In this document: positions 35,191-64,000 of the stretch, piece by piece
How positions within the stretch are numbered: the first letter of the stretch is position 1
Layout of the letters: every line of letters begins with the position of its first letter
From: Chlorokybus atmophyticus
Taxonomy: Eukaryota > Plantae > Mesostigma and Chlorokybus algae
Length of the DNA stretch: 64,000 nucleotides
Direction: 5' to 3'
NCBI GenBank assembly: GCA_009103225.1
Contig: RHPI01000585.1
Coordinates: forward strand, 285,061-349,060
The notes under the pieces: generated by a model
What the model was told of the DNA's origin: nothing
The model's database searches: none
What the model saw: only the letters and a program-made list of their open reading frames with translations
Translations under genes and position numbers: made by a program

Positions 35191-35262
35191 TGATACATCT
35201 GTTCACAAGACCTCATGCGCAATGCTGTGTAATGTATGCGAATGTCAACATCGCCTGTCAAC

Positions 35263-40219: not shown

Positions 40220-43200
40220 ATGGCTACTTGGGAGGGCAGCGAACTGCCTGCTGTAGCTGATTGCTTCAGGGCCAAGGGCAACCATTTGCTGGGCAAGGTG
40301 ATAGGCCAGCAGTTGTTGATGAAGGAGGAGTACAAGCATATGCGCACAACGCTGATGGTCAACCTGGAGAAGCTGAAGAAGGAGATGTTAAGCAAGTGGC
40401 CACTACCTCAAGGTATGAAGGGCAAGGACTTCAAGATGAATGCCGAGCACCGGCAGGAGCTCGACGAAGTATGCGAGGCGGTCTTGCAGCAGTCACTTCC
40501 ACTGGTCTTTGACGCAAACCACACGCACACGTGGACAAAAGGTGAGCTGCTTTATTGGTGACATCTGCTATTTTACAGGAACTTGAATTCAGCTGTGTTG
40601 AAGTCAGCTTTCAAGCATGTCGTTTAGCTTTCAGTTCACTCACTGTCTGCTTAGCTGTCTTGCCGTTGATAGTCCTTGCCCTGGTTGCTATGTTTGTGCT
40701 TGTTGATTCATTGACCAATTGCGATATGCTGTCTTTGAGGCTGTCTTGTGCTAGATGCCATCTTGCAACAGCTGAAAATGCTGTATTGGAGCTGTCTTGC
40801 CATTGACAGTCCTTGCCGTTTGTACTTTGCTGTACTCTTATCTGCTTGTGTTGCAGCACAAATCAAGCGACATGTACTGGTGCTGCAGTACTCCGTTGGC
40901 GCGAAGTGTGGCAGTGGTACCAGGAAGAGCGTCCAAGAACGCAATGAGGCCAAGAAGCAAAGGCGTGCCAGCGACATGGAAGCTGCACAAGGCAGCCGCG
41001 CTGCTCAAGCTGGAGCTGGCTGGGGCATGACATTTGTCTGGGGAGGGACATGAGGGCCAACCAGCAGGTGGTCATGCTTGCGCCTTTAACCGCTCTTCCT
41101 CTCATAAACGCTCAGTACCGGGCCACTTGGCTAAAAGAGAGGTAAGCAACCATGGTGCTGTCGGTCGACTGTCGGTCCTGTTGTACTGTTTTGCTGAGCT
41201 GCTGCCTCCATGCTAGCTTAACACATGGTGCCTGCTACTCTGAATGCTACTCTGCGTGTCACGACATGGGTGCGGACGGATATGCTGAAGATCAGGTGTT
41301 CGACATTTGCAACAACGCAGTAGTTGTTGGCGTCGCCACCATTGATTCCGTATGCGAGCCAGACCAACCAATGCGCACGAATCTAGTCTCTGTTAACCGC
41401 TGGATGGCAATGAGAAATGAGGATGGCAACCTTGCCGTTAAACTACATGTGAAAGAAAGGCATTTTCTCTATTGCACGCCGACAAGCAGCTGCCATGGTG
41501 GGCGTACTCTGGAGGTACATTGCTTGCTGTGGATATGCACATGCTCCTGCTGTGACTGTATGGTGTAGTGCATGAGCATTTCTTGTGTTAAACACAACAA
41601 CATGCAGAGCAGGGAGATGGAGTGGCCCATGATGTTCTTGGCCAGCGGAGGCATCTGCCCCTGTGAGGCATGCACTAACGATGAGCGCATTGCGGTGCCG
41701 GGTTGCATCAAGGACCGGCTGCCTACGCCCGCAGCCAGGCACAGCACAGACATAGAGGTTAATAAGCGCTGTTGTTAGGCTGCTGTTGTCAGGAGAGAGG
41801 GTGTGCCCCTCCTCCCTTTAATCCCCTACCCCAACACCACCACCAGCCTCGCCGCCGCCGCCGCTACTGCCGGGGCAGATGCCAGAGCAAAAGATGCTCT
41901 GGCTATGGCGGCCGCTGCGTTAGCAGCGCCGCCATGCAGCTGATATCAACATGAGACTCATGTCTCATGTCGATATCAGTGTTATAGTTAAGTAACACTA
42001 CATTAGGGCCTTAACACTAGGTTAACGGCCCTAATAAGGCTTAATAGGCTGTATAATCCCGTTGGGACCCTTATCTAATCCTAAATAAGGGCGGGGAACC
42101 TCTATGGAGGTAGCACACCGTTACATTCCCCCCCACTTAGGTTTCAATGTCCTCATTGAAGGGTTAGCAAAGCCCCATCACGAGTCACAAAACGAAAGCA
42201 GTGAGAGAACCAGGGCCGAAGCGGTAAAGATGTCTGCCAGCACCCTTTTACCGTTCGCGTGTGGACACAGTACTCCAGTACCCCCGAAGAACCTCTTGGC
42301 AGTTGGTAAGATTCCTTTCGGGCTCCCATGTATTGTGTTCAACACCATACCCTTTCCATTTCACCAAGTAGGACGGCGCGCGTCCGCGTCGAGGCTTACG
42401 GTGACTTAGGATTGCTTCCACCTCATACTCAAATGTATTGTCACCATCCACTGCGACTGGGGGTGGAGGAGGTTGAACCCGACCGTCTGATCGGTACGGT
42501 TTCAGTACACTCACATGAAACACATTGTGAATTCGTATCGACATTGGTAAATCCAAACGATACGCGTGAGTGCCGACCCGATCAATCACTTTGAAAGGGC
42601 CTATCCAGCGAGGGAAAAACTTGCGGGTACCCACTCCCTTGATGGATACGTTTTTGGTACTTAAAAGCACCGAACAGCCCACATCGTAGTTGGCCTCTCT
42701 ACGATGCGCATCAGCTTGGGCTTTTTGTCTGTCTTGCGCTGCGCGCAGACAGTCTTTTGCCAACGCTAACCTATCCTGCATGGCCGAAGCCATCTCGCGC
42801 GCTGCAGGTACGCGAGTCACGTCAGTAGCGGGCAACTTAATGTTCGCAGGACTCAGTGGATGCACTCCGTAATTCAAGAAGAACGGAGTCTCCTGCACAC
42901 TCTCTTGCCATGCATTATTGATCGCAAATTCAGCCATTGGGAGATAAATATCCCAATCACTCTGATTCGGGCTCACATAATGCCGGATGGTTTCCTCAAT
43001 CACTTGATTGGCGCGTTCTGTTTGACCATCCGTCTGTGGATGGTAAGCAGTGCTCATGTTCTGCTGAATGTGTAAGAAGCTGCATAGCGACTTCCAAAAC
43101 TGAGCCACAAATCGCGGATCGCGATCTGACACGAAGTTGCGGGGCAAGCCATGCAACTTGAACACAGACGCGACAAAAACCATCGCCAACTCACGGGAGC

Positions 43201-46200
43201 CTATCTCCGTGCGACAAGGGACAATGTGGACCATTTTTGTTAAACGATCCACGAAAACTGCAACCGCAGTGTGACCTAATGCTGTCTCTGGGAGCTCAGT
43301 AATTAAGTCCATACTCACACTTTCCCATTTGCCATCAGGAACAGGCAAAGGTCGCAGCAACCCAGCGGGTTTCTGACGTAACGGCTTGTCACGCTGACAT
43401 TTGTCACAGGTGTCAACATAACGCTTTACGTCAACAGGCAACGATGGCCACCAGTACAGCTGTTGCGCTGCCTTGGTAGTCTTGCGATTTCCAAAGTGCC
43501 CAGCGTACGGTGGGTCGTGTACATCAGCTATGCATTGCATGCGTAGCCCAGCATGGTCAGGTATCACCAAGCTAGCACCCATATAATACAAGTTGTCTCG
43601 TGCTTCAAGCTGTTGTATATTCTCTTGCCGTGAGAACCATGGGTCTAAGGAATACCCATGCAAAACAGATTGCACAAATGCATCATTAGCGGGCAATGTA
43701 ACTTGCGTCGCAAGCAATTGCGCACGCATAACTGCCAATAATGACGGACAGCGACTTAAAGGATCTGCCACATTAGTTCTGCCAGGCCGATATACCCATT
43801 CAAAAGTAAATCGCGACAGAAACTCATTCCAGCGAGCTTGCCTACGTGACAAGGTCAGCTGCGTTGAGAAGTATACTAATGGGTTGTGATCAGTCACCAC
43901 TGTGAACTGAACTCCCTCTAAGTAACATCGCCAAGTTTCGAGAGCATGTACGACACCAAGCAACTCTTGCTCAGTAGTAGTGTAGTTTACCTCCGCTGGG
44001 ATAAACTTCCTACTTTCATAAGCACATGGTCTGCCGTCTTGCAGTAGTACTGCACCACACCCAAGGGTGGAAGCATCACTGACCACAGTGAAATGTTTAT
44101 CCCAATTTGGCAATGCCAATACTGGAGCTGAAGTTAATGCTAACTTCACTTGTTGCATAGCAGCTTCTTGGTCTGACGTCCAAGAAAATGGCGCGTCCTT
44201 TCGCAACAATTTAGTCAAGGGCATTACAACTGTAGAATAACCCATCATAAATTTGCGAAAATAATTTGCCAATCCCAAAAATGATCTCAGTTGATGAATA
44301 TTTTTGGGTTGAGGCCAATTCTTGACAACTTGCACCTTGCGAGGGTCAGGCTTTACACCCGCACCACTCACAACATGTCCCAAGAATGGTAACTCCGATT
44401 TGCAAAAGTCACATTTTGCAAGGCTGGCAAATAAATGATGCTTCCGCAACAAAGTAAACACCGCTTCTAAGTGTTGCTTATGTTCCTCTTTGGTTTTACT
44501 AAAGACAATAATGTCATCCAAGTAAACCATAACATACTTGCCAAGTATATTACCGAAAATTTTATTCATTTCCTTCTGAAACACAGCAGGCGCATTCGTC
44601 AATCCAAAGGGTAGCACTTTGTATTGATAATGGCCCGAAGGTGTTCTGAAAGCTGTCTTATAGACATCAGCGGAATGAATTCGGATCTGATGATATCCAC
44701 TTGTCAGGTCTAATGTACTGAAGTATGCATTACCTGATAGTTTATCAAACACGTCATCAATCCGTGGCAACGGGTATCGATTTTTCACCGTGATTTTGTT
44801 TAAAGCACGATAGTCCACACACATGCGCAATTTTCCATTCTTTTTCATCACAAATAGGATGGGTGCGCCAAAGGGTGAAGAACTTGGTTCAATCAATCCT
44901 TTTTCCAATAACTCCTTGATTTGTGTTTCCATTTCCCCCCTTTCTCTAGGGCTTAGCCTATATATTGGCCGAAAAGGAGGATCACTATCAGGAATTAATG
45001 GTATAGTGTGTCCGACACCTCGGTCAGGAGGCAAGCCCGGCAACTCATCTGAGAACACATCTTGATATTCCTCAATGAGGTCTGCCACACCTTCAGTACT
45101 ACCCGGCGCAATGTCATCTGATGAAGACAAATGTACCAGAAAAGCCGGTGTGTTTTTGCGCAACGCACGTTTCACCTGTAGTGCCGTGAGTAACGCAGGG
45201 TCGGGTTGCTTGAATTCCAAGCTATGCGACCCTTTCACAGACAATGTAATCCGCTTACCGCCTTTCTTTACTGTGCACAAGCGTGCACCCGTATCCAATG
45301 TCATTGTGACATTATTTTGCCATTCTTGGCCTAGTACCACATCAACACCAGATATGTTGATTGCTACTACTATAAAGGCAAGATTGGCATAATAATTACC
45401 AATTTTAACCTTCAATTTTACTTCTCCCGTCACTGGCAATGTACCCCCAGCACCGGCAGCCGAAAATGCTGAGGGTTTGCGCATGATTTTATTGCGCGCA
45501 ACCCATTGCTCGTCCACGAAGTTGTGTGTCGCACCAGTGTCAATCAAAAACGAGCTATTCACACCTTGCATTGTGCCACTGAATGTCCACAACAAAGGTA
45601 CCACTCGTCCTTGAAAGGTAGCCAAGAATCCGTGACTAATGCGGGGGTTGATTAATATTGCTGATAATCGAATTGTCCCAGTCTCGCGCTTGGTGAATTG
45701 TTTTAAAACAGTACCCCCTCGAGTATACTTCAACCATGGGCCATGATATTTTGGCACCATTGCTACCACACTCAGGGATCTGTGTTTACATTGCAATTCA
45801 CTCAATGTGTGCAACACGTCGGTAAGCATGTTAAATTTCACATGTACCAGTACACAAGTATTTGCTTCCACTGTTGCAACATCAAACAGTGGTAACTTGT
45901 GATGTGTTTGCCATGCATGCGTCATTACATGCATTTGAGACAGATTATCAAACCAGTTAACTGCTTGTATCTCAAGCAACTGACTATCAACCTTTGCTAC
46001 ATCAGCCACAGCGTAATCCTATTCAACCTTCTTGGCTTTGCCCTTCGCCTTCGTAGGACAGGCCTTTGCAACGTGACCCGGCTGATGGCAGATGAAACAG
46101 GTGCGAGCTGCAGTAGGTGCATTACCAGCAGACGTACCACCAATTCGAGGAGCGAATGTCTTCGCTTTCTTCGCCACATGTACACTCGGCGGAGGATAGC

Positions 46201-48730
46201 GCTTTATTCCCCCCCCTTGCGGCTTGGCCATAGCTGTCACGTTCGACTTTTCCTGCACGACCGTGTCATCATTGTACAGGTAAACACTTAGCTTTTGCAG
46301 CTTGGCCAAGTCATCAGGAACCCAAGGAAGCCCCGTTGCAGTGTTGTACTGCAGCTGATCGCGAACACGCGCATCCAAGCCACGCTTGTACAACTCGAAC
46401 TGCTCAGCTTTGTCCATAGGCATCAGGCCGCTATTGGCACGACCAACTAATGCTTGGAACTCCTGCAGATACACTGATGCTGCTCGACCATTCTGTCGCA
46501 ACTTGCTAAGTTTGTTACGAGCCTGAGTAGCCGGATCCATGCCACCATAGCGCTCCATCAGAAACTGAAACAGTGCTGGTACTGTCTTCACAGCGCCATG
46601 CTCTGTTTGTCGTGCCCACTCGGCGAGAGCATCAGATGGCATAAGCAACTCAGCAACGGCAACGTGCTCACCCACCGGGCGCTTTAGCGCTGTCAGGTAA
46701 TGTTCGACAGTCACCACCCAATCATGGATACTTACACTACCGTTAGGCTTGAACTTTTCAGGTTTGTTCAATGCCGTAACCGGCAGCCCCACTGATGCGC
46801 CAACTGATGAAGCAGCACCCGCTACTTGCTGACGCAGCGCCATCAACTCAGATTGCATCGCATCGAGGCGTGCCTCCAACTTCACTCGGCCAGCCAACTT
46901 ATTTTCCAAGTTAGGTCCCAAGTACCAGAACACATCCTTGCAACGCTGCTGCGTTTCAACCATCAAGTTGGCTAAGGCCTCAAACGCCATCCGCTTCCCT
47001 TCGTATGGGAGCGGCCTATCGTAGACGGCCATCAGAGCAGCCACTTTTGGATCACCACGCACGAGTGGCGGAACATTGTTCGTCAACTCGTGCTCAATCA
47101 TGAGGATCACCATCTCCTTACTAGTGCGAGGGAGAGTGGCAAAATCTGTTTCATAGCCATTACGAACCTTCTGCGCCCATGCATCCCACACTTCTTGACG
47201 AAGCTGCGGGTGGGCGTCAAGTAAAGTCTTGCGCTCGCGCGCATACTTTTCAATGGCTCCGCCAATGACACTCGGTGTGTCCATTACAGCTGGCTCACTG
47301 TGGGTAGACAGGTCGGGGGAAGCTTCGCTATCTTGCTTAGCCTCTTCGCTTTTGTCACTGTCAGTGAGCTTATAGCTCTCACTCGTGTCCGAGTCCCTCA
47401 CTTTGTCATCACTGGATGGCTCATATGAGGATGATGAATCAGGGACGGTGAAGTACTTTTCACCTCCCTCTCCTTGGTCAGACATCTGCCCAAGGATAAC
47501 ACTGTTCGAATAGTGCTCCGATACCAATGTCAGGAGAGAGGGTGTGCCCCTCCTCCCTTTAATCCCCTACCCCAACACCACCACCAGCCTCGCCGCCGCC
47601 GCCGCCACTGCCGGGGCAGTTGCCAGAGCAAAAGATGCTCTGGCTATGGCGGCCGCTGCGTTAGCAGCGCCGCCATGCAGCTGATATCCACATGAGACTC
47701 ATGTCTCATGTCGATATCAGTGTTATAGTTAAGTAACACTACATTAGGGCCTTAACACTAGGTTAACGGCCCTAATAAGGCTTAATAGGCTGTATAATCC
47801 CGTTGGGACCCTTATTTAATCCTAAATAAGGGCGGGGAACCTCTATGGAGGTAGCACACCGTTACAGCTGTCACATGATGAACAGTCGCCAATGCAGCCA
47901 TTGATCACGCCTTGACAGTCGCAAATTGCATTACATGTTGCAGTTCTTGACAGTCATCAACGCATTGCAGACTGTCAATGATATTGACAGTCGCCAATGG
48001 ACTGCACTAACCACTCTGGGTCCTATGCAGGTTGCTGGGGCGATCTTTGAATGTGAAGATGAAGAAGCCGCCGCCATGGATTTGCGAACTGCAGCGGGGA
48101 TTGTGTGCAACACCAAGCCCAACGCCCCCACCAGAGAGGAGGCAATGGACATGTATGAGTACTACCACCACATCGAGCACACGCTGTTCCACAATGGTCA
48201 CCAGCTGGCATTCAAGGACCCCGACCGAATGGAGCGTGTGCCAGACGAGCTGATCTTGAGAGCAATTGTCAGCTTTGCTGCAAGGAAAAAGTGGTTGGTG
48301 TCCAACAAAGATGTTGAAGGAGGGTGCGAGTGGGGATCCAATCGCAAACTACCAGGTATGCATACTTCACTGCAGCAAGTTAATGACAGTCCTTTGCTGG
48401 TTTCAAGAGTGATGATTTGGTACAATGCAGGGCTTTTGAGCGAGGCAAAGAACAGAAAGCCATTCCGACCCAAGAGGCAGTGGATGCGACAGCCTTCGTC
48501 ATCCTCCTAGGTGGGTGGTTTCCTATGCTATGGTCAAGTTATTGTTTGTGTAAGCACGTGACAGTACAGTTGTTGTGCAGAGCTCAACAAGCACGCGCTG
48601 AGTGTTTGCAAGAGACGCTGTTGAGCAAGGCTGTCGCGGGTGTCTTCACATTGGGGCTGAATCAACTAGGGAGAGCACAAGTCTGGCTTCCAGGCAAAGG
48701 TGCTGGCAACACAACAGACCGATGTTGTTA
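40220..48730 (+). CDS. Multi-exon gene of unknown function, with a gypsy element in one intron
   Basis: Coding-like exons bounded by GT/AG at ~40220-40551, 40857-41050, 41260-41515, 41607-41759, ~48030-48355 and ~48408-48520; the full phase path was not resolved. Confidence 0.5.
42248..46018 (-). CDS. pol: Pol: MT-like domain, protease, RT, RNase H, integrase, chromodomain
   Basis: Uninterrupted ORF of ~1250 aa: IDTGA, YLDD, SDASTLG..ADPLSR, HDPPYAGH..CDKC, VSMDL..QTERANQ, GPF, YLVKWKGY..TWEP; in frame with gag after a single TAG. Confidence 0.96.
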   Translation of the reverse strand, partial: DYAVADVAKVDSQLLEIQAVNWFDNLSQMHVMTHAWQTHHKLPLFDVATVEANTCVLVHVKFNMLTDVLHTLSELQCKHRSLSVVAMVPKYHGPWLKYTRGGTVLKQFTKRETGTIRLSAILINPRISHGFLATFQGRVVPLLWTFSGTMQGVNSSFLIDTGATHNFVDEQWVARNKIMRKPSAFSAAGAGGTLPVTGEVKLKVKIGNYYANLAFIVVAINISGVDVVLGQEWQNNVTMTLDTGARLCTVKKGGKRITLSVKGSHSLEFKQPDPALLTALQVKRALRKNTPAFLVHLSSSDDIAPGSTEGVADLIEEYQDVFSDELPGLPPDRGVGHTIPLIPDSDPPFRPIYRLSPRERGEMETQIKELLEKGLIEPSSSPFGAPILFVMKKNGKLRMCVDYRALNKITVKNRYPLPRIDDVFDKLSGNAYFSTLDLTSGYHQIRIHSADVYKTAFRTPSGHYQYKVLPFGLTNAPAVFQKEMNKIFGNILGKYVMVYLDDIIVFSKTKEEHKQHLEAVFTLLRKHHLFASLAKCDFCKSELPFLGHVVSGAGVKPDPRKVQVVKNWPQPKNIHQLRSFLGLANYFRKFMMGYSTVVMPLTKLLRKDAPFSWTSDQEAAMQQVKLALTSAPVLALPNWDKHFTVVSDASTLGCGAVLLQDGRPCAYESRKFIPAEVNYTTTEQELLGVVHALETWRCYLEGVQFTVVTDHNPLVYFSTQLTLSRRQARWNEFLSRFTFEWVYRPGRTNVADPLSRCPSLLAVMRAQLLATQVTLPANDAFVQSVLHGYSLDPWFSRQENIQQLEARDNLYYMGASLVIPDHAGLRMQCIADVHDPPYAGHFGNRKTTKAAQQLYWWPSLPVDVKRYVDTCDKCQRDKPLRQKPAGLLRPLPVPDGKWESVSMDLITELPETALGHTAVAVFVDRLTKMVHIVPCRTEIGSRELAMVFVASVFKLHGLPRNFVSDRDPRFVAQFWKSLCSFLHIQQNMSTAYHPQTDGQTERANQVIEETIRHYVSPNQSDWDIYLPMAEFAINNAWQESVQETPFFLNYGVHPLSPANIKLPATDVTRVPAAREMASAMQDRLALAKDCLRAAQDRQKAQADAHRREANYDVGCSVLLSTKNVSIKGVGTRKFFPRWIGPFKVIDRVGTHAYRLDLPMSIRIHNVFHVSVLKPYRSDGRVQPPPPPVAVDGDNTFEYEVEAILSHRKPRRGRAPSYLVKWKGYGVEHNTWEPERNLTNCQEVLRGYWSTVSTRER
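46019..47484 (-). CDS. gag: Gag
   Basis: First ATG at 47484 (MSDQGEGG); KPEKF..W...VEHYL, ARNKLSKLRQ..Y.QEF, CFICHQPGHVAKAC knuckle; ends at TAG 46019-46021. Confidence 0.93.
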
Positions 48731-48899
48731 GCTGCTCCTGCTACCTCCTGTAACCGCAGCTTGAAGTGCATGTAGGAGACTGTAGCTACAGTCTCACTGG
48801 CTTGACACTGATGGGCTGTCGTTTAACAGTCCATTACAGCATTTCTGTGAATTGCATGCGTGTCGGATTGTATGCACCGGGCACAGTGCAGGCACCAGT

Positions 48900-49445
48900 G
48901 CCAAGACCATGCATGGCTTCAATAGCTGTGACATAATGACAGACCATGCATGGTGCGACTGTCAATCAGACCATGTGGTGCGTTGTCTGTTAGGACCAGA
49001 CATGGTGCCGCTTGTGGACCATGCATGGCTTCAATGGCTGTGACATCATGATAGACCATGCATGGTGCGACTGTCAATCAGACCATGTATGGTGCGTTGT
49101 CTGTTAGGACCATGCATGGTACCGCTTGTGGACCATATATGCACAACAACGTCCGTATCCATGGAACGTGCATGGTGCGACTATCGATCACCAGACATGT
49201 GGAAGTAATAAACCATGCCTGGTCTTCTGCGCCAGGGGGCATTGCACCATACATGGTCCTTGCAAACTCATACAAACAGGTCACCATACATGGTGCGACC
49301 CCAAAAAAACATGGGACCGTTCACGTGAGGTTTGGACCATGCATGGTCCGACTGTCATTAACAGTCCGACCATATATGGTCCCACCAAATTCACTTAGCA
49401 GGGGAAAATTCCGGTCCAGAGGTACAGACCATTCATGGTCCTTTG
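48900..49445. repeat. Right subterminal array of (G)ACCATGCATGGT palindromes
   Basis: About 12 copies, including two tandem ~110-bp units at ~48900-49120. Confidence 0.9.
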
Positions 49446-49689
49446 ACGTCAATCGGTGTGAAACATGACCACATAACAACGCCGAGCTGCTCAGTGGCGC
49501 CTTTCATAAACGCAACTTGTGGTGTTGATTTATAACAGCATTAGTCATCTATCAGCTTGTACTACTAATCCCACTGGTGGCGAGGGTTGACAAACACTAT
49601 AAATTAAAATTTCGGAAGCTTCTTGTCAAGGACCATGTGGAGCTGCTTAATACTAGTAACCCCCATGTCGATGAACCCTCGCTAACGAT

Positions 49690-52151: not shown

Positions 52152-52760
52152 TGTCATGCCTATCGCCCAAGCATGCCAGTCGTCATCGGGCATGCCTACA
52201 GCGAGACCCTCGCCCGGCTTACCAGCATGGCGACCCGCGCGCGTCTCTGACCAGTAGCTAGGTCATGTCTCTAGAGTAGCTCATGACCATAGCCTACATA
52301 GGCACCGCGCGTAGCTGTTCAGTTGTGAGTTCAGTTATAAGTTGGGTTCTATATCGAGTGGGGATTTCCTGTGGAAATAGCCTCGATATGACCGTTAGCT
52401 TATGTTCTGGACAGTCATGAGTTGACTTGTATAAGTAGGCACAGTGTTCACCAGATCAGCTGGTGACACTGTAAGTGAGAAAGCTAAGAGCTTGTGAAGC
52501 GACTTGAACTACGAAACACACTGTCCCGGTTCCCAAGAATTCCCTCACCGTGTGAGAACCTGTGCATGTTCTTGTGCACTGTGCTTGTCTTTGCTGTGAG
52601 CTTTGTGTACTTGGTCGCGGTGTGCTTGTTGGCATCAGTCAGGGCATAGCATCCACGTGTTGCTTGCTCATTCACCTCACTTAACAGTGTAATTTCTCTT
52701 CCACTCATGCAAAGAACTGTGTAAACAGCACTACCTATAGTAGTGGCTTGTTGACTTACA
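52152..52760 (+). repeat. 5' LTR of a truncated gypsy-like element
   Basis: TG..CA ends, TATAAG at 52430, followed by a leader and the gag ORF; no tRNA-type TGG PBS. Confidence 0.8.
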
Positions 52761-52967
52761 GTGTCACCCTCTTTGCTCAAGTGAGTGTAGTTGCAGGCTG
52801 TACATCAGCATCGCAATCTGCAGTTGTACACATCGCAGTGCATCGTTGTCACCGTCATCGCATAGCGCGCACAAGCGCTAGTGTGTTGGGTGATAGCAGC
52901 ACTGGAGATCCCATTGTAGAGCACAAACACTCTACCCTTCATCCACTTTCACCATCGCATCAGCTGT

Positions 52968-55360
52968 ATGAGCAGGCCCACCCCTTTCTCGCCAATAGAA
53001 GAAGGGGATCCCAACAGCTGGAGCCCAACCTCCAACCTTACCTACGAGCGCGCAAGTGAAGGGAGCGATTACCGTAGCAGCAGAGGCTCACGCCCCGTCT
53101 CCGGCTTCACCTCCTCTCACTCCACTCCTCGACAAGGAGCATCTCCACCACCGTCGGACAGTGACGACAAGGAGATGGAGCCTTCCAGCTCAACCAACTC
53201 CCTACGCTTCTCTGGACGCCTTGGCACCACCTCACTTGACAAGTTCATCATCAAGTTCCACTCCAAGATGCGGCAGCAAGCCCTAAAGAGCAAGGACTGG
53301 ACAGATGAGGTATCGTTTCATGTGTCCGCTCAATACCTTGATCACGAAGCACACGATGTGTGGAAGTCCGTCGCTGAGTTGCACAAGATTGATGGCTATG
53401 GCGAGTTGGCCAGCACAATAGCCNNNNNNNNNNNNNNNNNNNNNNNNNNNNNNNNNNNNNNNNNNNNNNNNNNNNNNNNNNNNNNNNNNNNNNNNNNNNN
53501 NNNNNNNNNNNNNNNNNNNNNNNNNNNNNNNNNNNNNNNNNNNNNNNNNNNNNNNNNNNNNNNNNNNNNNNNNNNNNNNNNNNNNNNNNNNNNNNNNNNN
53601 NNNNNNNNNNNNNNNNNNNNNNNNNNNNNNNNNNNNNNNNNNNNNNNNNNNNNNNCCCCTGCTACCAACACCGAACTCGCGTGCTCCAGCGGGAGGCAGT
53701 GTTTTCACCCTCGGCTCAGTGGCATTGCGTGCACCCGCGCTTACGGTGGGCGCGGCCATGTCGGACTCCCCGTTGAAGGACCTCTACGCCGCACTCCGGC
53801 GCACCTTCTCACCTCAAACCAACAGCAAGGTGGAGGAGTTGAGGCGTTTTCGACGCAAGCCCAACGAGGACCCTCTCCGACTGTATTCACGGTTGGAAGG
53901 GTTGCTTAAAGACACTGACTACAAGATCGTCAGTGAGGAGGCGGCAGCAGTGGTGTATGTGGCCGAGTTGGATCCCACCTCGAGCGAGTCCACGCGCCTG
54001 ACGCTGAACTACAGCAGGCCCCTCGGCTACACCCTCAAGGAAGCTTTCGAGACTGCACAAGCCATCCACAAGCGCGCAGTGTATGAGAAAGCGGTGCTGG
54101 ACACCAACCGCAGTGCCTCGCGGCCTATTGCAGGCACAAGTGCAGAGCCTCTTCGGCGGGACCGCAGCCGAGAGCCGCAAGGTATCCACAACAAGGATAA
54201 ACGGTCAGCTCATGCTGCCCTTGTGGCTCCAGTGCTGTGCCGCCGGTGTGGTCGACATGACCAATACAAAAAGGAGTGCACCGAAGATTACGGCAACCTT
54301 GTGTTCGACTACTGCCACAAGACGGGACTCTTGGAGACAGTATGCTGGCTCAAGTTCCCTGAGCTGCGGCCCTCTATTGGCTACAACAACGGCAACAACG
54401 CTGTTGGCTACCGCGGCAACAACAACAACAACAACAATAACGTGGGCTACAACAACAGCAACCACGCTGGCGGCTACAACAACAGCAACAACGCTGGTGG
54501 TCGCAACAATGGCAACAACGCTGGTGGCCACAACCCCAACCTCAACAACAACGCTGGGGCCCGCAAGGAAAAAGCTGGCTACAGAGGGAAAAACCTCCCT
54601 CCACAGCACAAAGGACCTGAGGGACGTCCTCGCGCTGGAGCTGCTGCTGTAAAGGCACCAACCAATCCACCAGCTATTGACCAAGTGGCAGCCCTGATGG
54701 CGCGCGTGGCACAGCTGGAGGAGAACAAGGAGCGGGACTATCAAGCCTGCTATGCTGCTAGGTGGGCACTGATGGCACCAAAACGGGATAGGGACACTCC
54801 CACGCCGTCACGCGTACAACCATCAAGACGTGCGCGCAGGGAAGCTGGCGCGTCGTCAACAGCGGCATCGTCGGACGCCACAAGTGGTGCTGCCTCGGCA
54901 GCCACAACCACTGCTAGGACGACGCCGTCGACGACGCCGTCGACGACTCCGTCGGCGTTCACACCGACCACGACAGCAGGTCAGCACTCTTGGCACCACG
55001 CTGTCCCCGGTGATGGAAAGCACCCACGCCGCAACAACCATGGTCGTTGGGTTCGAGGGTGGTGAATCCACCACTCCTGCCTCCATCGAAGCGACCACAT
55101 CGGCCGCAACTGCTGCCACCCTCACAGCCGCCACCTCAGTAACGACGGCTGCTGCCGGTGCCACCACCATCGCCTCCAGTAGTGCTGCCACACCCACTGC
55201 ACCACTTCTTGAGATTCGAACGGCACCGCCACCAGCACTTGACGTCACACAGCAAGTGCCACGCGGACCACATGCAGAACGCGCCTGGGCGTCGGTTCTA
55301 CGCAACGTGGAGCCCACCACCATTGCGTACGAACTAGGGGGGCAACGCACCACGCGCGTG
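52968..55360 (+). pseudogene. gag: Gag-like ORF (spans the assembly gap), cut off by the downstream DNA transposon
   Basis: LDKFIIKF..YLDHEAHDVW, LRRTF..VEELRRFRRKPNEDPLRLYSRLE, degenerate knuckles CRRCGRHDQYKKEC and YCHKTGLLETVC, Asn/Gly-rich and Thr/Ala-rich tails; no pol seen. Confidence 0.75.
53424..53655. other. Assembly gap (N run)
   Basis: 232 consecutive N. Confidence 1.
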
Positions 55361-55389
55361 GCACGCGATACCGGTAATTATGAGACCCC

Positions 55390-55960
55390 CGAATTTTTGA
55401 AAATTCATGGCAAACGCACTGAATCTTCGTTGTATTTACCGTTTCAGCTTTTTATCGCGTGAATATTCAAGTGTTTTCGTACATTCTGTGCAATCCCTGC
55501 CAAAACGAAATCGCGACATTCACCTATAAATCGCGTGAATATTCACACAATAAATCAATGCCACCTTTCAAAACCCATATACCTCGTATATTCAGTTGAA
55601 ATCAATTGAATGTTCAAGGGCATGCAATTGTGAATGGACACAGCATGTGCTCTGCTAAATATTCAGCTATACATTGCCTGAACATTCATGAAGGGGCATA
55701 AGCTTGTGGCTATAACAGACAGCTTAAACTCACCAAGTCCCAACTGCCCGTGAATAATCAATTGATCAGCTTGTCACACATGTATATTCATAACCTTCAT
55801 CAGTTTCATGCCACAGATGTGAGTGAACATTCAACACCAATCTGAAAATACGCAATACGATTCACACTAAGTCCTAGCTTTGAGTGAATTTTCAACACCA
55901 TTCCAAAACCAAGCAATACGTTTTGCACTAACTCCTAGCTGTGAGTGAATATTCAACCCC
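55390..55960. repeat. Subterminal array of TGAATATTCA-like palindromes, including three ~62-bp tandem units
   Basis: Variants near 55399, 55459, 55535, 55607, 55679, 55824, 55885 and 55946; tandem units at 55818-55960. Confidence 0.85.
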
Positions 55961-56165
55961 ACACGAATAAACATATACTCTCATTTTGGCCAAGTCCCGA
56001 AAGTGATTGAAACCAAGTAGATTGCACTGCTAATTCTAATATACAATCTAGTATATGTCAAAGCCAGAGTTGCTCAGCAATTCTACACAGCTGGTTTGAG
56101 TTGATGGTGGGGGACAGCTCTGATATGGACTACAGCATTGCTATGCTACACACCACCTGCTACTA

Positions 56166-59100
56166 CTAGCTCAACTCATGTCTTTGCTGTGCTAACATAC
56201 TGTCCATGAGTGTTCGCAATCGTCTTCTCAACCTGTCTGCCACTTGAGGATGAAACCAACTCCTTTGCATCTGCACACAACCACACAGCAATAACATGTG
56301 GTTACTAAGCACGTGTCGGCCTACACGACAGTGCCATTGAAGCACCTTCCACTTGTAAACATTGCAGTGCACATGCATGAACTGTACCTGTTGAAATATC
56401 CGTGCGTTTGGGTCAATTGGACCAGCTTGTACCCCATCTATAAACTTGTCAAGATACAGCATGACAAACAACCCGCACGCAACTCCATCCTTCTGCTGAG
56501 GGACCTGCACAAACATGTGTCAATGCTTGCAAACCAAATGCATGTGCATGCATCCAATCAGTGCTTGTGACAGAATGCATGCAAACTCATCACTAGTGCA
56601 ATGCAACGTGTGCTACCTGTGGTACAAGAAGCTGTACGTTTTCGGGAGAGAAGCGTCGTTGTGAGTCACTTCCATGCTTTCTGCCCCACATGTAGTCAAG
56701 GTAAGCGCGCATAGGTCCATCAACGTTGCGATGCAGGCCAAGGGAGTCGAGATGGACGAGTAAAGGCGGCGTGTCACTTCCAAGTTGGTTTCCAGGATTG
56801 CACACAAGCAGCAGACTCCAGTGAGTCCTGTGGACAATTAAAATAATTCCAGTTTGCAAATACAGCAGCAATTCAGCAAGATATTCTTGGCGCTTATTCT
56901 CACCGCGTGTCTGGGTTGACAATCACTCCCAGCAAGTCCTTGGCAAACGGATCACTCTCCCACCTGTCTATCCTGTGATTGCTCGTGTGCCAGTCATTTT
57001 GTCTATGGCAGCGCACGATCTTGGTGTAGAAATGCGGGTGGAACAGCTTCACCTGAATGCCATCTGCTCTGCCTAAGATTTCCTCTTCCTTGTATCTGCA
57101 TGTGCATCCCACGTACATATGAGATACACGAATAACACAGACGCAACAAATCACATACCTGCAAAAGAAGTGGAGGATGGTGTCATTGAGCTCTTGTCTG
57201 CCATCCAGCAACCTCCTGTCCGTTTCAAGCACTGGCACCGCATCACGTGCACTTGCACTAGGGTAAATGAACAGTGGCTGCGGTGTTGACGGCTGCGGGT
57301 TGCTGACTGGATCGTCCAGCACCATGATATCATCATCGCTGCCCACGAGGTCCACAACTGCCGCAGCCGTCGTGGGTTGCTGATTACAGCCCTCTTCGTC
57401 TTCATCGTCAACTTCCATCGTGACTGCCTCTGCAGCCATAAATGGTTCAATTGGGCAAGAACCACAACGCAAATCAACAAGCTCAAGCACACAGCAGCTT
57501 ACCATTGTTAGCCTCATCCCCACTCTCTTCAACGTGTTGAACCCCACTCTGCACAGGTTGTGAAACCCTACCGCAACTGCCCGGCAGAGAACGACGAGCA
57601 AGGCTCTCCCTTGGGAGCTGCGCTGGAGCACCACCTTCTTCGTACGCAGCGCATCGCGAGCACGTAACCTCAACCATGCTACCCACAGCGTGCCGTCGAC
57701 AGAGGCTGTTTGGACACGTCGCGCAGACTTGAAAAGCTGCTTCGTTGCAGTTCTTCACATGGCACCTGTTGAAGATATTCCTACATCCGGTCAGCCTGCC
57801 TTGCATACAAGAGAGAAGAGAAGGGACCTCGATGGGAGGACCTCGAAGACTCCGGACATAAAGGTCCTGGCGCGGACTGCAGAGAAGGGTCCTAGGAGAA
57901 TCGTCATATCTCCTAGAATACTCAGTCATTTGGGACGTGGCATAGCTTGTTGGAAAGCTTATCAAGTTAGCTACGTGGCACATCTTACAGCGTAGGATAT
58001 GGTTCAGTATATCGGACGCTGTTGCATGTAGACCAGCAATGTGTACAAACTGTGTACTGACTGGCGGGTATATAACCCCGTAGTCTGTTGGTAATAAATC
58101 GGGAAGTGTGTTGCCTTCTCCTGTGTGTCATTGCTTGCCCTCTTCACTTGCATGCTTGCTTCTCAACAGGTTATGGGCCCACACTACGCGTGAAAAGTGT
58201 GAGAAAGAGAAAGAAAGCGAAGTGAAGAAAAGTGACAAAGTGCATTGAAGTGAAGATCGAAGTCACTCAAGACTGAAGAGTGAAGAGAAGACCGAAGTCA
58301 CTCGAGACTGAAGGCGCTGAAGAGTGAAGTAAAGACCGAAGTCATTCAAGACCGAAGTCATTGAAGTCACTCAAAAGTGAAGTGTAAAAAAAAGTTACTG
58401 AAGTCAACAAAGTCACTCAAGTCACAACACGTGAAGATTATCAAAGCAAGTCTCAAGTGCTAACTGCAAGAAGAAAGCAGGCGCGGCAAAGATGGAGGCA
58501 AGCTACGATAAAGGGCTGATCACAAAGCTGGACACAAACAACTACAGCACTTGGTGCGTAGAGATGAAGGCACTACTTATCCACAAGAAGATGTGGAAGT
58601 ATGTTGACCCGAAGGCATCTGCACCAAGAGCAGGAGAAGAAAGCATCTGGCTTGAACACTCAGTTGAAGCACATTCATTGATGGTGCTTAACTGCAAGCC
58701 ACATCACTTTCCCATGCTCACAGCATGTGAAGATGGCAGACAAGCTTGGGAGAAGCTTGCAGCCGTATTTCAAGCCAAGAACAACGCCAGAAAGATACAA
58801 TTACGCAAGCAGCTAAGCGCGCTTCATAAAGAGACGGCCGAGCCGGTCACAAAGTATGTTGAACGTGCGAGAGAGCTGTGGGCGGACCTCATCAACGTCG
58901 GCCACAACATGGAAGAGACAGAGGTCGTATTGGCGATTGTTGCAGGACTGCCATTAGAGTACGAAGTTGTCGCTACTCTGCTCGAGACATCGTCATCGGA
59001 GCTAACCCTAGACGATGTGCTACCCAAGTTGCTCACTGTGGAGCAACGCGTCTTAAAGAAGGAAGAGCAAGCGGACTCTGTGGCCTTCTACACACGAGAC

Positions 59101-62100
59101 AAATACAAGAAATTAAGCAACTATGAAGACAAGAACAAGGCGAAAGGCAGCAACTCAAAGTTCAAGAATCTCACATGCCACTATTGTGGTATTAAAGGAC
59201 ATATCTCAAAGGATTGTCGTAAGCGCCAACGAGAGCAATCTGAAGCAGGCACCAGTAGCAACGCTCAACGCAAAGAAAAGGGTGTTGCATTTACTGCCTC
59301 AAGGAAGTTTGATACAACTTCATGGGCAATTGACTCAGGCTGTGACCAGCATCTCACACCGCACAAGGAGGTGATGGAGAACTACAGGAAGATGTCAACC
59401 ACAAGGAAGGTGGAAGGCTTTAGTGGTCACGAGTTGGAAGCAATAGGAGTTGGTGAAGTGAGGCTTCAATGCAAGATTGGTGATGGTGAGAGAGAGGTGG
59501 TACTGCGTGAAGTATTGCACGTACCTGGAGCTGCTGCAAGCTTGTTTTCTGTGAGAGTTGCTGAGCGCGTGGGAGCTGAGATAGTGATCCGGGAGGGACG
59601 CTGCTCCGTACGCATGGATGGGGTCGAGTACATGGTCGGCACCCAACGAGGAGGGCTCTACATTGTGGAGCAGACTCATGGCAGCAAGGCCATGATTGTG
59701 AAGGAGAAGGAGACGGCTGAGCTTTGGCATCGAAGGTTCGGGCATTTGGGCTACAGCAACCTCACACGCCTGGTCGCTGAAGACATGGTGAAGGGCATTA
59801 CTGGGAGCAAGGAAGATTTTCAAGCGTCTTCAACTACGCTCTGTGAACCCTGTGTGTTGGCCAAGCAGCATCGCATGCCGTTCTCATCATCTTCTTCAAG
59901 TAGCAAACATCCCTGCGAGCTTGTGCACATGGACGTTTGCGGGCCTATGCGCATTGTGGCGAAAGGAGGGGTAAGGTACTTTGCAACATTCCTCGACGAC
60001 TACAGCAAGCTTTCCATCGTCTTCCCTTTGATTCAAAAGTCAGAAGTCGCTGGAGCTGTGCGTACAGTCATTGCATTGCTTGAGATTCAATCGGGCAAGA
60101 AGATGAAAGCAATGAGAAGTGATCGAGGAGGGGAGTACATCAACGCCCAGCTCAAAGAGTTCTTCGCCAGCAAAGGCATACGGCATGAGACAACAGCACC
60201 ATACACTCCGCAGCAGAATGGAGCAGCTGAACGTCTCAACCGAACGTTGTTGGAGCGTGTTCGAGCCATGCTCAATGACACCAAGTTGGAGGACAGTCTG
60301 TGGAAAGAGGCCGTTCTCACTGCCAACTACATCCGCAACCGTTCACCGATAAGCTCTGAGCAAAAGACTCCGTGGGAGCTCTTTTACGGTGAAGCGCCAG
60401 ATGTGAGTGGCATGCGTGTGTTCGGATGTGTGGCATATGCACTTGTGCCAAGTCAATTGCGACACAAGTTGGAGCCGGTCAGCAAGAAGGGCATCTTCGT
60501 TGGCTACGAACCAGGCTCAAAGGCGTACAAGGTCCTACTGGAGGACACGCGCAAGATTGTGGTGAGCAGAGAAGTCGTGTTCCACGAAGGCTCATCACAA
60601 GTTGAAGCTGAAGAAGGTTTCTACCCTCAAGATGAAGATGACAAAGCACAACCTGAAGAGCTTTCAAGCAGAGAAGAGGTTGAAGGCGAGGCATCAGTCA
60701 TCAATAAAGAGCAGGGCTCATCTGTAGCAGGCGAGAAGCAGAAGCAGCAGGAGCAAGCTCGACGCTACCCAGTGAGGGAAAGACAAGCACCTGACTTCTA
60801 CAAGGCACACATCGCTAGTGTGCACAATGACGAGAGTGAAGAACCAAGCACCTACGAGGAGGCATTGCGAGCACCAGATGCAGAACAATGGCAGCGAGCT
60901 ATGGATGATGAGATTGCATCACTCCATGCCAACAACACATGGGTGTTGGAGAAGCCCCCGCAAGGTGTGAAGCCCATTCCGGTCAAGTGGGTGTTCAAGG
61001 TGAAGCGTGATGGTCAAGGCAACATCGAGCGCTACAAGGCAAGGTTGGTGGCAAAGGGATTTTTGCAACAAGAAGGTGTGGATTTCAATGAAGTGTTTGC
61101 ACCTGCAAGTAAGCATGCAACCTTCCGCACATTGATCGCCATGGTTGCTGCTGAAGACCTCGAGTGTCACCACCTTGATGTGAAGACTGCTTTCCTTTAC
61201 GGAGAGCTGGAGGAAGAGATCTACACCAAGCAACCACCAGGCTACGCAGAAGGGGAGCCAGGCATGGCTTGCAAGTTGATCAAGGCTTTGTATGGGCTGC
61301 GACAAGCACCACGTGTGTGGCACATTCGCCTCACGAAAGAGTTGGAGAAACTCGGCTACAAAGCATCCTCAGCGGATCCGGGGCTCTTCATCCATGAAGA
61401 GAAGAAGGTTTACTTGCTCGTGTATGTGGACGACATCATCGTCACGGCCAAGCAAGTTGAAGACCTGAAGCAAACGAAGCACGGATTGCAGCAAGCATTC
61501 GCAGTACGCGACCTTGGAGAGGTCAAGTTATTTCTTGGCATGGTGATAGAGCGTGACAGAGCAGCACGCACAATCAAGATCAGCCAAGAGCAGATGGTGA
61601 AGCAACTTGTCACCAAGTTCGGACTCAACGAAGCAAAGACCAAGTCTACTCCATTGGCACTCGGCACCAACCTCGTCAAAGCGAAAGATGAGGAAGTACT
61701 CGACAAGGCTCAGTATCCCTATGGTGAGCTTGTTGGGAGTATGCTCTACCTAGCAGTGTGCACAAGACCCGACATCGCACATGCAGTTGGAGTGCTTGCG
61801 CGCTACATGTCTGCACCAAGCATGGAGCACTGGCGTGCAGCGAAGGGAGTATTGCGCTACGTGGCTGGAAGCGCAAGTGTTGGCATCAAGTTTGGTTGCG
61901 GAAGCACAGAGATGGAGGGCTATTGCGACGCAGACTTTGCAGGTGACCTCGATAGCAGGAGGTCCACCACGGCGTACGTCTTCAAGTTGAATGGAGGCGT
62001 GGTGAGCTGGAACAGTAGGCTGCAACCTACAACAGCAGCATCTACTTCGGAAGCGGAGTACATGGCAGCATCGGCTGCAGTGAAGGAGGCGTTATGGCTT

Positions 62101-64000
62101 CGCAAGCTGATGGCAGATCTGGAGCACCCGATGGCGTGTATCACGATCAACTGCGACAACCAAGGCGCCATCAAGTTGCTGAAGCACCCCATTGCCTCGA
62201 CAAGGACAAAGCACATTGATGTCATGCATCACTTTGTGCGAGACAGAGTCACACGCAAGGAGGTTGAGTTCCAATATTGCAATACGGAAGACATGCTCGC
62301 GGACTTCATGACGAAGCCACTGTCACCGCTGAAGTTCAAGGCATGTTGCAAGGGACTCGGCATATGTGCTTAGGTGAAAGAAGACCAAGCGTTGGAGGCC
62401 AAGCTGCCCGCGTGGGAGTGTTGAAGATATTCCTACATCCGGTCAGCCTGCCTTGCATACAAGAGAGAAGAGAAGGGACCTCGATGGGAGGACCTCGAAG
62501 ACTCCGGACATAAAGGTCCTGGCGCGGACTGCAGAGAAGGGTCCTAGGAGAATCGTCATATCTCCTAGAATACTCAGTCATTTGGGACGTGGCATAGCTT
62601 GTTGGAAAGCTTATCAAGTTAGCTACGTGGCACATCTTACAGCGTAGGATATGGTTCAGTATATCGGACGCTGTTGCATGTAGACCAGCAGTGTGTACAA
62701 ACTGTGTACTGACTGGCGGGTATAACCCCGTAGTCTGTCGGTAATAAATCGGGAAGTGTGTTGCCTTCTCCTGTGTGTCATTGCTTGCCCTCTTCACTTG
62801 CATGCTTGCTTCTCAACAGCACCTGTGTTTTGGTTCAGTACAAGTGATGATGGTTCTAGGAGTGAAGTTCCTCACAACAAGATGCCAAGCATTTGCTGCA
62901 ATGAAGTCCACTTACTCATGCCTTGGGCACTCCCAATATTCATCCTCCACAGGTGGCATAGAGACACAGTGCGCGTGGTAGCTTTTCCAGCAACCTTCCA
63001 CATCGCAGCCAGATATGGTGCCCCCATCCTTGCAGACAAAGCAGTAGTCTTCATGTTCCCGATGTTCCAACGCATCCAGCTCCAGTCTCGGTCTCATCCT
63101 GTGAACAAAGGTTCGGTGGCCAGGTCTACAGTCTCACAGTAGGGATAGGAGGCATCACAATCGCAAACAGTACCTCTTGTACTCAAAATGCCAGTCACGG
63201 CGTGTGGTCCATGACACCTCGCTCGAGGCGCTATTGGTTTCGCTTTGGGCACCCTGCACCAAGTACACAAGATGGTTGTATGTGATGCCAAAACCCAGGA
63301 TATATGAGGACATCCAGATTCTAATGGACAACGTTGTTAACTCTCCTCTTACCGGAGTGTCCCGGTGCATGCCTCGACGCATGAGACTGCGCCTGTCTTT
63401 AACAAGCGCTACAATTACTTTGTTGTCATGGGGATCAATTCCCTCAAACCACTGGCCCTTGACCTGCCAGCAAGAAGGGATATTCATCAGCCATTTTCAT
63501 ACTACTATTTCAATTTACTATCATCACACCAAGCACACGCCAAAACGATTGCAACACAGCCACTTACCAGGTTGCAATCAAGGTAGGTTTGTTCTGCAAA
63601 GCGGGGCTTGTCTTTTCTTAGGATTGCAAATCCTCCACTGTGCTGGACTTGGTTGCTCATGTACCACCTAGCTCTGAGCAGCTGGTGCTCCCGACCAGCT
63701 ATCACCACAACATCAAAAGATTGCACCCTGCCATACCAATGGATCTTCTTGGTTGGGTCATCTGAGTCACGCCCAACGGTAAACACGCCACAGTCCATGG
63801 TGCGGAGTTTCTTCTCCATTTCCTCTGCTCTGAACTGACCGATGTCCTTGTAGCGTGCTCTGAAGTATCGCTTGATGTACTTTGGAAAGATTGGACCGCT
63901 TAATAGCTCCATCTCGTGCTTTGTAAGCTCCCTAGCAGGTCCACGCCAGTGATGCAGCTCAGTCATATGCTCCATGTCCTTTGCCACGACATGTCCACGA
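56166..64000 (-). CDS. Spliced fusion ORF: CACTA transposase C-terminus + PHD-C5HCH + SIMs + Ulp1/C48 SUMO protease (5'-incomplete)
   Basis: Exons 64000-63568, 63463-63353, 63253-63174, 63098-62916, 57765-57503, 57429-57159, 57095-56904, 56827-56617, 56504-56388 and 56270-56166; all nine introns are GT-AG with compatible phases and there is no in-frame stop (~650 aa visible). Motifs: WYGRVQSF..LLRARWY..TYLDCNLVKGQWFEGIDP; EDYCFVCKDGG..YHAHC..WECPRHECHVKNC..CATCPNSLCRRH; HWSL..HLDSL..PQQKDGVACG. Confidence 0.82.
58169..58182 (+). promoter_or_regulatory. Primer-binding site complementary to the anticodon stem-loop of initiator tRNA-Met
   Basis: GGTTATGGGCCCAC is the reverse complement of GUGGGCCCAUAACC of tRNAiMet, the half-tRNA priming type known from Drosophila copia, yeast Ty5 and Volvox Osser. 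Confidence 0.85.
58492..62373 (+). CDS. gag-pol: Gag-Pol polyprotein, 1293 aa (gag, CCHC, PR, GAG-pre-integrase, IN, RT, RNase H)
   Basis: CHYCGIKGHISKDC, WAIDSGC, LWHRRFGH..CEPC, VHMDVCGP..QQNGAAER, RYKARLVAKG, YVDD, YCDADFAGD..TKHIDV; uninterrupted. Confidence 0.98.
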   Translation: MEASYDKGLITKLDTNNYSTWCVEMKALLIHKKMWKYVDPKASAPRAGEESIWLEHSVEAHSLMVLNCKPHHFPMLTACEDGRQAWEKLAAVFQAKNNARKIQLRKQLSALHKETAEPVTKYVERARELWADLINVGHNMEETEVVLAIVAGLPLEYEVVATLLETSSSELTLDDVLPKLLTVEQRVLKKEEQADSVAFYTRDKYKKLSNYEDKNKAKGSNSKFKNLTCHYCGIKGHISKDCRKRQREQSEAGTSSNAQRKEKGVAFTASRKFDTTSWAIDSGCDQHLTPHKEVMENYRKMSTTRKVEGFSGHELEAIGVGEVRLQCKIGDGEREVVLREVLHVPGAAASLFSVRVAERVGAEIVIREGRCSVRMDGVEYMVGTQRGGLYIVEQTHGSKAMIVKEKETAELWHRRFGHLGYSNLTRLVAEDMVKGITGSKEDFQASSTTLCEPCVLAKQHRMPFSSSSSSSKHPCELVHMDVCGPMRIVAKGGVRYFATFLDDYSKLSIVFPLIQKSEVAGAVRTVIALLEIQSGKKMKAMRSDRGGEYINAQLKEFFASKGIRHETTAPYTPQQNGAAERLNRTLLERVRAMLNDTKLEDSLWKEAVLTANYIRNRSPISSEQKTPWELFYGEAPDVSGMRVFGCVAYALVPSQLRHKLEPVSKKGIFVGYEPGSKAYKVLLEDTRKIVVSREVVFHEGSSQVEAEEGFYPQDEDDKAQPEELSSREEVEGEASVINKEQGSSVAGEKQKQQEQARRYPVRERQAPDFYKAHIASVHNDESEEPSTYEEALRAPDAEQWQRAMDDEIASLHANNTWVLEKPPQGVKPIPVKWVFKVKRDGQGNIERYKARLVAKGFLQQEGVDFNEVFAPASKHATFRTLIAMVAAEDLECHHLDVKTAFLYGELEEEIYTKQPPGYAEGEPGMACKLIKALYGLRQAPRVWHIRLTKELEKLGYKASSADPGLFIHEEKKVYLLVYVDDIIVTAKQVEDLKQTKHGLQQAFAVRDLGEVKLFLGMVIERDRAARTIKISQEQMVKQLVTKFGLNEAKTKSTPLALGTNLVKAKDEEVLDKAQYPYGELVGSMLYLAVCTRPDIAHAVGVLARYMSAPSMEHWRAAKGVLRYVAGSASVGIKFGCGSTEMEGYCDADFAGDLDSRRSTTAYVFKLNGGVVSWNSRLQPTTAASTSEAEYMAASAAVKEALWLRKLMADLEHPMACITINCDNQGAIKLLKHPIASTRTKHIDVMHHFVRDRVTRKEVEFQYCNTEDMLADFMTKPLSPLKFKACCKGLGICA

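Follow-up and report, generated by a model that had tools for sequence, protein, structure and literature searches.

A mobile-element gene of Chlorokybus atmophyticus combining a predicted NSD-type PHD-C5HCH module with a predicted Ulp1/C48 protease

Protease domains of the Ulp1/C48 type (ULP domains) recur in Mutator-like elements (MULEs), CACTA elements and Ginger1 transposons, and their role there is still unknown (PMC13317346, PMC2836005). Here we analyse a gene with such a domain in a stretch of 64,000 nucleotides from the alga Chlorokybus atmophyticus (contig RHPI01000585.1 of assembly GCA_009103225.1; this whole stretch is referred to as the window). The gene lies on the minus strand, runs to the right-hand edge of the window and belongs to a mobile element with a terminus at 55370/55371. 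Its last seven exons appear to encode an NSD-type PHD5-C5HCH pair, an acidic stretch with two motifs resembling SUMO-interaction motifs (SIMs), and a complete Ulp1/C48 protease.

ULP domains were found in five CACTA families of grapevine (Cactavine-2, -3, -4, -5 and -13), and the same work described rice proteins in which a Tnp2 and a ULP1 domain occur together (Benjak et al., 2008; PMC2528002). A 2026 study reported further rice ULPs in fusion with transposase domains of the MULE and En/Spm types (PMC12903978). The Chlorokybus gene has in common with the CACTA-ULP systems of grapevine and rice that a Ulp1/C48 domain is carried by a cut-and-paste element; in rice it is annotated in the same protein as an En/Spm-type transposase. 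In contrast, a PHD-C5HCH module and SIM-like motifs have not been reported for these systems, the terminus of the Chlorokybus element is not CACTA-like, a Tnp2/Transposase_21 core would fall outside the window, and the host is an early-diverging streptophyte alga. A similar three-part combination, with both a PHD finger and a Ulp1 protease in a transposase tail, is found in Ginger1 elements such as Ginger1-9_HM from Hydra. Ulp1 and PHD were described as C-terminal domains of Ginger1 transposases, and the legend of Figure 1e in that paper aligns them with those of Mutator transposases (Bao, Kapitonov and Jurka, 2010; PMC2836005). However, the transposase of Ginger1 is integrase-like (or MuDR in the case of Mutator), the PHD finger is a plain one that was not shown to be of the NSD-type PHD5-C5HCH kind, and the hosts are animals.

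The best functional precedent is provided by the Kaonashi (KIU) ULP genes in Arabidopsis VANDAL MULEs, which lack terminal inverted repeats (Hoen et al., 2006, as summarized in the review PMC13317346). According to this summary, the Ulp1 domain of KIU is found in VANC-type genes and has long been conserved, and VANC proteins direct hypomethylation of related elements. KIU and the Chlorokybus gene share a transposon-borne Ulp1 domain, but KIU is presented there as a separate MULE gene and not as a transposase tail; the summary mentions no PHD-C5HCH module in KIU, and gives the role of its Ulp1 domain as unknown. The predicted reader part of the Chlorokybus protein has its counterpart outside transposons, in the PHD5-C5HCH module of the H3K36 methyltransferases NSD1, NSD2 and NSD3, for which structure 4gnd is available (He et al., 2013, as cited in PMC10629977). 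In a survey of fungal transposons, the C48 protease is listed among the 'specific accessory domains' for picking DNA transposons (PMC5751038).

The initial annotation of the locus, made from the sequence alone, had put forward the fusion of transposase, histone reader and SUMO protease as undescribed. That is too strong, as transposase-ULP proteins and tails with Ulp1 and PHD have been published (PMC2528002, PMC2836005). What does seem undescribed is an NSD-type PHD5-C5HCH module in a transposon: our literature search found no paper in which the C5HCH domain was linked to a transposon. The new part seems limited to this pair of fingers and the SIM-like motifs, and possibly to the algal host.

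On the minus strand, ten exons and nine introns, all of the GT-AG type, can be joined into a single frame of 654 codons, with the terminal TAG as the sole stop. In the direction of transcription the gene and its 3' flank comprise the following features.

63999-63568, minus strand: exon 1 (partial), 144 codons, open frame with a GTAAGT donor; possibly the C-terminal region of the transposase of the element, DUF6830/DUF4216-like by language-model features only
63463-63353, minus strand: exon 2, 37 codons, reading VKGQWFEGIDPHDNKVIVAL...; phase-compatible GT-AG splice, intron 1 being 104 nt long
63253-63174, minus strand: exon 3, 80 nt, Ser/Thr-rich linker
63098-62916, minus strand: exon 4, predicted NSD-type PHD finger; in-frame ATG at 63097-63095
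62915-62823, minus strand: native intron 4, 93 nt; original AG acceptor at 62824-62823
57765-57503, minus strand: exon 5, predicted C5HCH-type Cys/His finger, then linker; acceptor rebuilt from the end of a long terminal repeat (LTR) and a duplicated G
57429-57159, minus strand: exon 6, acidic stretch with two SIM-like motifs, then the predicted start of the C48 domain (LNDTILHFF)
57095-56904, minus strand: exon 7, predicted middle of the C48 domain
56827-56617, minus strand: exon 8, predicted C48 core; His513 at 56823-56821 and Asp538 at 56748-56746
56504-56388, minus strand: exon 9, predicted C48 core; oxyanion Gln585 at 56495-56493 and nucleophile Cys591 at 56477-56475
56270-56166, minus strand: exon 10, 34 codons and the TAG stop
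55370-56165, minus strand: 3' untranslated region and subterminal repeat field, with GTGAATATTCA-like repeats at 55459-55956; element terminus at 55370/55371

Because none of 2000 shuffles of the coding sequence was free of stops, and because the GC content at codon positions 1, 2 and 3 (0.60, 0.42 and 0.57) differs from that of the introns (0.44), the exon-intron structure is real and not a product of chance. Nine GT-AG introns with compatible phases, as initially proposed, were recovered. The accompanying statement that about 650 codons contain no stop is correct for the 654 open codons only if an entire copia retrotransposon of 5052 bp is spliced out with intron 4, which measures 5150 nt; the other eight introns are 63-117 nt long. 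The frame of exon 1 is open to the edge of the window, and therefore the start of the gene lies beyond base 64000. Intron 2 (99 nt) is stop-free and in frame, and the frame stays open even if it is retained. Intron 6 (63 nt) is also in frame and stop-free; its removal gives a spacing that we judge to be nearer to that of other C48 domains.

Domain searches were run exon by exon, with each exon as a separate query. Exon 4 matches PHD_NSD (PF22908) with 29.5 bits, against a cut-off of 23.9, and zf-HC5HC2H with 29.5 bits, while the match of exon 5 to C5HCH (PF17982) is marginal, with 26.5 bits against a cut-off of 26.3 (Pfam). The best matches of exon 4 in the PDB are the PHD5 fingers of NSD3 and NSD2 (E 4e-11 to 3e-10), the alignment covering residues 12-59 of the NSD3 chain 4gnd. 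Exon 5 aligns to the next part of the same chain (residues 63-92), collinear with exon 4, and the junction between the two exons, CPRHE/CHVKNC, is split by intron 4. The reading of exons 4 and 5 as an NSD-type PHD5-C5HCH pair holds at the level of sequence: the NSD module is their best sequence match, and the two predicted fingers are collinear and adjacent as in NSD3. The similarity is incomplete at the C-terminal end. The C5HCH match in exon 5 spans positions 5-34 of the 50 in the profile, leaving the last third (35-50) unmatched, and after CRRH the exon reads TCSRC, in which the final ligands would be Cys/Cys (C-x2-C) and not Cys/His. None of the ten exons has a Pfam match to a SET domain. 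The predicted gene product would share only the reader module with the NSD H3K36 methyltransferases, and is not an NSD protein, because SET, PWWP and other NSD domains are absent. Binding to histones is a prediction only.

Matches to the Ulp1/C48 protease are found in exons 6, 8 and 9, and fall in the correct order. Exon 6 can be aligned, with E values of 0.26-1.1, to the beginning of two protease chains, SENP7 (3eay, residues 18-64) and yeast Ulp1 (1euv). Exons 8 and 9 give collinear sub-threshold Pfam matches to Peptidase_C48 (PF02902), of 15.3 bits over profile positions 96-137 and of 16.4 bits over positions 162-188, respectively. In addition, QQKDGVACG in exon 9 is the counterpart of QxxDxxxCG in alignments to the protease chains 4piq and 6gzu, and for exon 8, C48 accounts for 90 of the 100 nearest named Atlas clusters. 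His513 in HWSL, Asp538 in HLDSL, and Gln585 and Cys591 in PQQKDGVACG are all present, and we take these to be the catalytic positions, as in other clan CE proteases. Exons 6-10 are thus predicted to encode a complete Ulp1/C48 domain with an intact-looking catalytic centre. For clan CE peptidases, ubiquitin and Nedd8 are possible substrates as well. The fingers are separated from the protease by the acidic stretch VVDLVGSDDDIMVLDD, which by inspection of the residues resembles two SUMO-interaction motifs, VVDLVGSDDD and IMVLDD (57358-57311). Both domain assignments of the initial annotation are confirmed at the level of sequence by these results: the NSD-type PHD-C5HCH module by Pfam scores above the cut-offs and collinearity with 4gnd, and the Ulp1/C48 triad with its oxyanion Gln by the presence of all the motifs named for it.

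The gene is part of a mobile element, as had been proposed. The subterminal field past its 3' end contains families of direct and inverted repeats. Allowing one mismatch at most, GTGAATATTCA has nine matches, all of them in 55459-55956 and none elsewhere in the 64 kb, against 1.1 expected by chance. Contigs of the sequencing runs X1 and X2 depart from the window at 55369-55371 with three different flanks, which makes four with the window's own, and when the foreign X1 flanks were sought in the window as a test for nested insertion, there were 0 matches. Because a subterminal repeat field is combined with four flanks at a single break point, 55370/55371 is the terminus of a mobile element, and a host gene is ruled out. 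To the left of this terminus, 53719-55369 is high-copy sequence, with a word depth of 116 in X1 at 55300-55396. An open reading frame (ORF) of 448 amino acids on the plus strand (53719-55065) is rich in Asn/Gly repeats and has no Pfam match. Apparently, the DNA transposon landed in another repeat, which may be the LTR element at 52430-52770.

In the window, the gene is itself interrupted by a retrotransposon, with the following features.

57767-62818, plus strand: Ty1/copia LTR retrotransposon, 5052 bp, antisense to the gene and inside the 5150-nt intron 4
57767-58168 and 62419-62818, plus strand: copia LTRs of 402 and 400 nt, about 99% alike (two mismatches and one 2-nt indel)
58492-62373, plus strand: copia gag-pol ORF, intact, 1293 amino acids

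The copia Pfam domains are found in the order Retrotran_gag_2, zf-CCHC, gag_pre-integrs, rve and RVT_2, and the LTR ends read TGTTG...CAACA. A 5-bp target-site duplication, GGTGC on the minus strand, is located at 62823-62819 and 57766-57762. Since the duplicated bases are the G of the native AG acceptor plus the four that open exon 5, the exon 5 acceptor now exists in two copies. The copia element inserted very recently, exactly on this acceptor, and its family may still be active, given the intact ORF and the LTR similarity of about 99%. The native acceptor (62824-62823) now runs into the LTR, reading Glu-Cys-Cys-stop, with the stop after two codons, while the acceptor rebuilt from the LTR end and the duplicated G restores the original frame. 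We infer that the native acceptor is likelier to be used than the rebuilt one, because it has kept its own upstream intron sequence. The window copy is probably impaired by the insertion, and its main product is probably cut short after the PHD finger. Cut by the window edge and interrupted by copia, it is not the best copy for further study.

A copia-free form of the gene exists as DNA, because contigs of the runs X1, X2 and X4 join exon 5 directly to the native intron 4: they pass from exon 5 beyond 57769 into GTTTTGGTTCAGTAC..., which is the native intron 4 of the window. Compared with the window, this form shows 14 changed letters and one gap over 2400 nt in X1, and 8 changed letters over 1760 nt in X2, corresponding to 99.4-99.5% identity, and carries a flank other than that of the window. 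The junctions specific to the window (those of copia, and the left one at 55369/55370) were not found in the contigs of X1, X2 and X4, which can drop variants, so that their absence is unproven. The form without copia could reflect an insertion polymorphism, as an allele of a different strain, or could be a near-identical paralogue. Between the window and the copia-free form 3 of 1159 coding and 13 of 1241 non-coding positions differ (Fisher p=0.02), a weak sign of coding constraint; the coding differences include one synonymous change and one N524G. The differences between the window and the X1 copia-free form over 55370-57769 are mostly transitions (A>G 7 and T>C 6 of 27 places) and are concentrated at 55419-55604, in the subterminal repeats. 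Short contigs of X1 and X2 match exon 7 (56898-56993) at about 92% identity, with 5 of 60 and 6 of 84 letters differing, and more diverged copies of this protease exon are present in the X1 and X2 genomes. The pair of filled and empty sites is a natural case in which to ask whether a retrotransposon located on a duplicated acceptor can be spliced out.

The nature of exons 1-3 is less clear than that of the last seven exons. Exon 1 has no Pfam match at E<=1, no phmmer match among 1.84 billion representative proteins and none at E<=10 in a word-indexed search; exon 2 has no family match, and no domain was found in exons 2 and 3. A single-sequence AlphaFold2 model of exon 1 was unusable, with a predicted local distance difference test (pLDDT) value of 32. 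The closest ESM-feature neighbours of exon 1 are DUF6830 (0.95, with 183 shared features) and DUF4216 (0.81). Nine of its ten best named Atlas matches belong to the family or clan of the top match, DUF6830, and 26 further matches are DUF4216; the structural neighbours of the top Atlas matches are Plavaka and Transposase_21 proteins. The Atlas recognition value, 1593, is low considering that 91 of 100 proteins of known families reach 2300. We consider exons 1-3 to be, probably, a C-terminal transposase tail, and treat the ESM result as a lead and not as confirmation. The initial label of a 'DUF4216-like CACTA transposase C-terminus' could not be confirmed, as Pfam, phmmer and the word search gave no match and only ESM-feature look-alikes were found.

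Another large element occupies 29787-49460 of the window. At E<=1e-3, tblastn found no further copy of any exon in it, and at E<=50 a comparison with the first 207 residues of the product yielded noise only. In ten of its ORFs, the only Pfam match is to a SET domain, with none to a transposase family. This domain is clear (Pfam E 2e-08) and is encoded by the ORF at 37706-38086 on the minus strand; the largest ORF (35872-37107, 412 amino acids) is without a transposase family, as are the eight others tested. The window thus holds a SET domain of the histone-methyltransferase type and a methyltransferase-associated reader module on two different mobile elements.

We think it fairly probable that the ten exons form the 3' portion of a gene for the main protein of a multi-copy cut-and-paste DNA transposon, and that the product of this gene forms one chain with the transposase. 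One long fusion protein is possible because three short, phase-compatible introns link exons 1-3 to the last seven exons. The single chain of the initial annotation is supported in so far as the sequence allows the N-terminal region, PHD-C5HCH and Ulp1 to be read in one frame; no transcript was found to support it. Several further observations weigh against the fusion. Exons 1-3 have no homologue by hidden Markov model or sequence searches, the label 'transposase' being derived from a language-model lead, and a DDE core would lie beyond base 64000, past the window edge. The one terminus inside the window, CCGGTAATTATGAG..., does not resemble that of CACTA elements: it reads CCGGTAATTATGAGACC on the plus strand and ...TAATTACCGG on the gene strand, not TAGTG. 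The CACTA termini expected from the initial annotation are therefore not seen at 55370/55371, in a comparison that covers one end of the element, the other lying beyond the window. When searched singly, exons 8 and 9 each stay below the Peptidase_C48 cut-off of 20.7 bits. Exons 1-4 were found in no RNA run. The sole RNA-like record is one 158-nt contig of run X3 (57475-57632, 1 mismatch), which crosses the exon 5 donor unspliced and extends 28 nt into intron 5; it may be pre-mRNA, an intron-retaining form or contaminating DNA, and gives no support for the spliced model. Retention of intron 5 would end the protein after ...NNGKLLCA, with the C5HCH finger kept and the protease lost.

The in-frame ATG in exon 4 is a further point against a single chain, as it is the first full codon of the exon and permits a separate PHD-Ulp1 protein. 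The locus would then make two products, with PHD-C5HCH-Ulp1 as an accessory protein that starts at 63097 or arises by alternative splicing, and with an upstream protein that ends at a stop in retained intron 1 (63507-63505) or retained intron 3 (63157-63155). Such an arrangement is possible, but we regard it as unlikely. The stops that quickly follow if intron 1 or intron 3 is retained fit it well, as do the lack of a domain in exons 2 and 3 and of any transcript that links exons 1-4. In En/Spm, a common transcript that is alternatively spliced gives rise to both TnpA and TnpD. The Arabidopsis MULEs with KIU have three separate genes, of which this ULP gene is one (PMC13317346). However, introns 1-3 are canonical GT-AG introns that keep the frame, and at 75-104 nt they resemble the others (63-117 nt). 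Moreover, a promoter would hardly fit into the 58 nt between the ATG and the stop met by read-through from exon 3, and proteins with both Tnp2 and ULP1 domains are known from rice (PMC2528002).

Exons 1-3 could instead be the lineage-specific N-terminus of a PHD-C5HCH-Ulp1 cargo gene, the transposase being a different gene of the element. The failure of Pfam, phmmer and word searches with exon 1, its low Atlas recognition value (1593 against 2300) and the lack of similarity between the exons and the other large element of the window would all be expected from such a gene, but the Atlas matches of exon 1 to DUF6830 and DUF4216, with their Plavaka and Transposase_21 structural neighbours, point to a transposase, and we hold the cargo-gene explanation to be improbable. 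A host or domesticated gene outside any mobile element is more improbable still, to the point that we rejected it on account of the repeats, the flanks and the copy number. The intact frame would suit a host gene, as would the smaller divergence of coding than of non-coding positions from the nearest copy. Against this stand the subterminal repeat field directly past the 3' end, at least three other flanks at 55370/55371 together with the further pieces of about 92% identity, and the embedding of the locus in retrotransposon sequence.

By analogy with published transposon-borne ULP domains, removal of SUMO is the most plausible function of the protein encoded by this transposon gene. We hypothesize that the PHD-C5HCH module and the SIM-like motifs would bring the protease to SUMO-modified chromatin, where it could strip SUMO from silencing, repair or transposition factors at the chromatin of the element. 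This may help the element to move or to escape silencing. In its most complete form, the hypothesis describes a transposase of a streptophyte alga that combines, in one chain, a reader of H3 tails, SIMs and an active SUMO protease, and that strips SUMO at its own copies or targets; in this full form we consider it doubtful.

A module of the histone-reader type and SIM-like motifs, placed beside an intact-looking catalytic centre, lead to testable hypotheses on where the protease acts. With Chlorokybus as host, the association of transposons with ULP domains reaches the deepest streptophyte branch. If the one-chain reading is true, the protein would represent a self-contained anti-silencing device, and the transposon-ULP association may be older than land plants.

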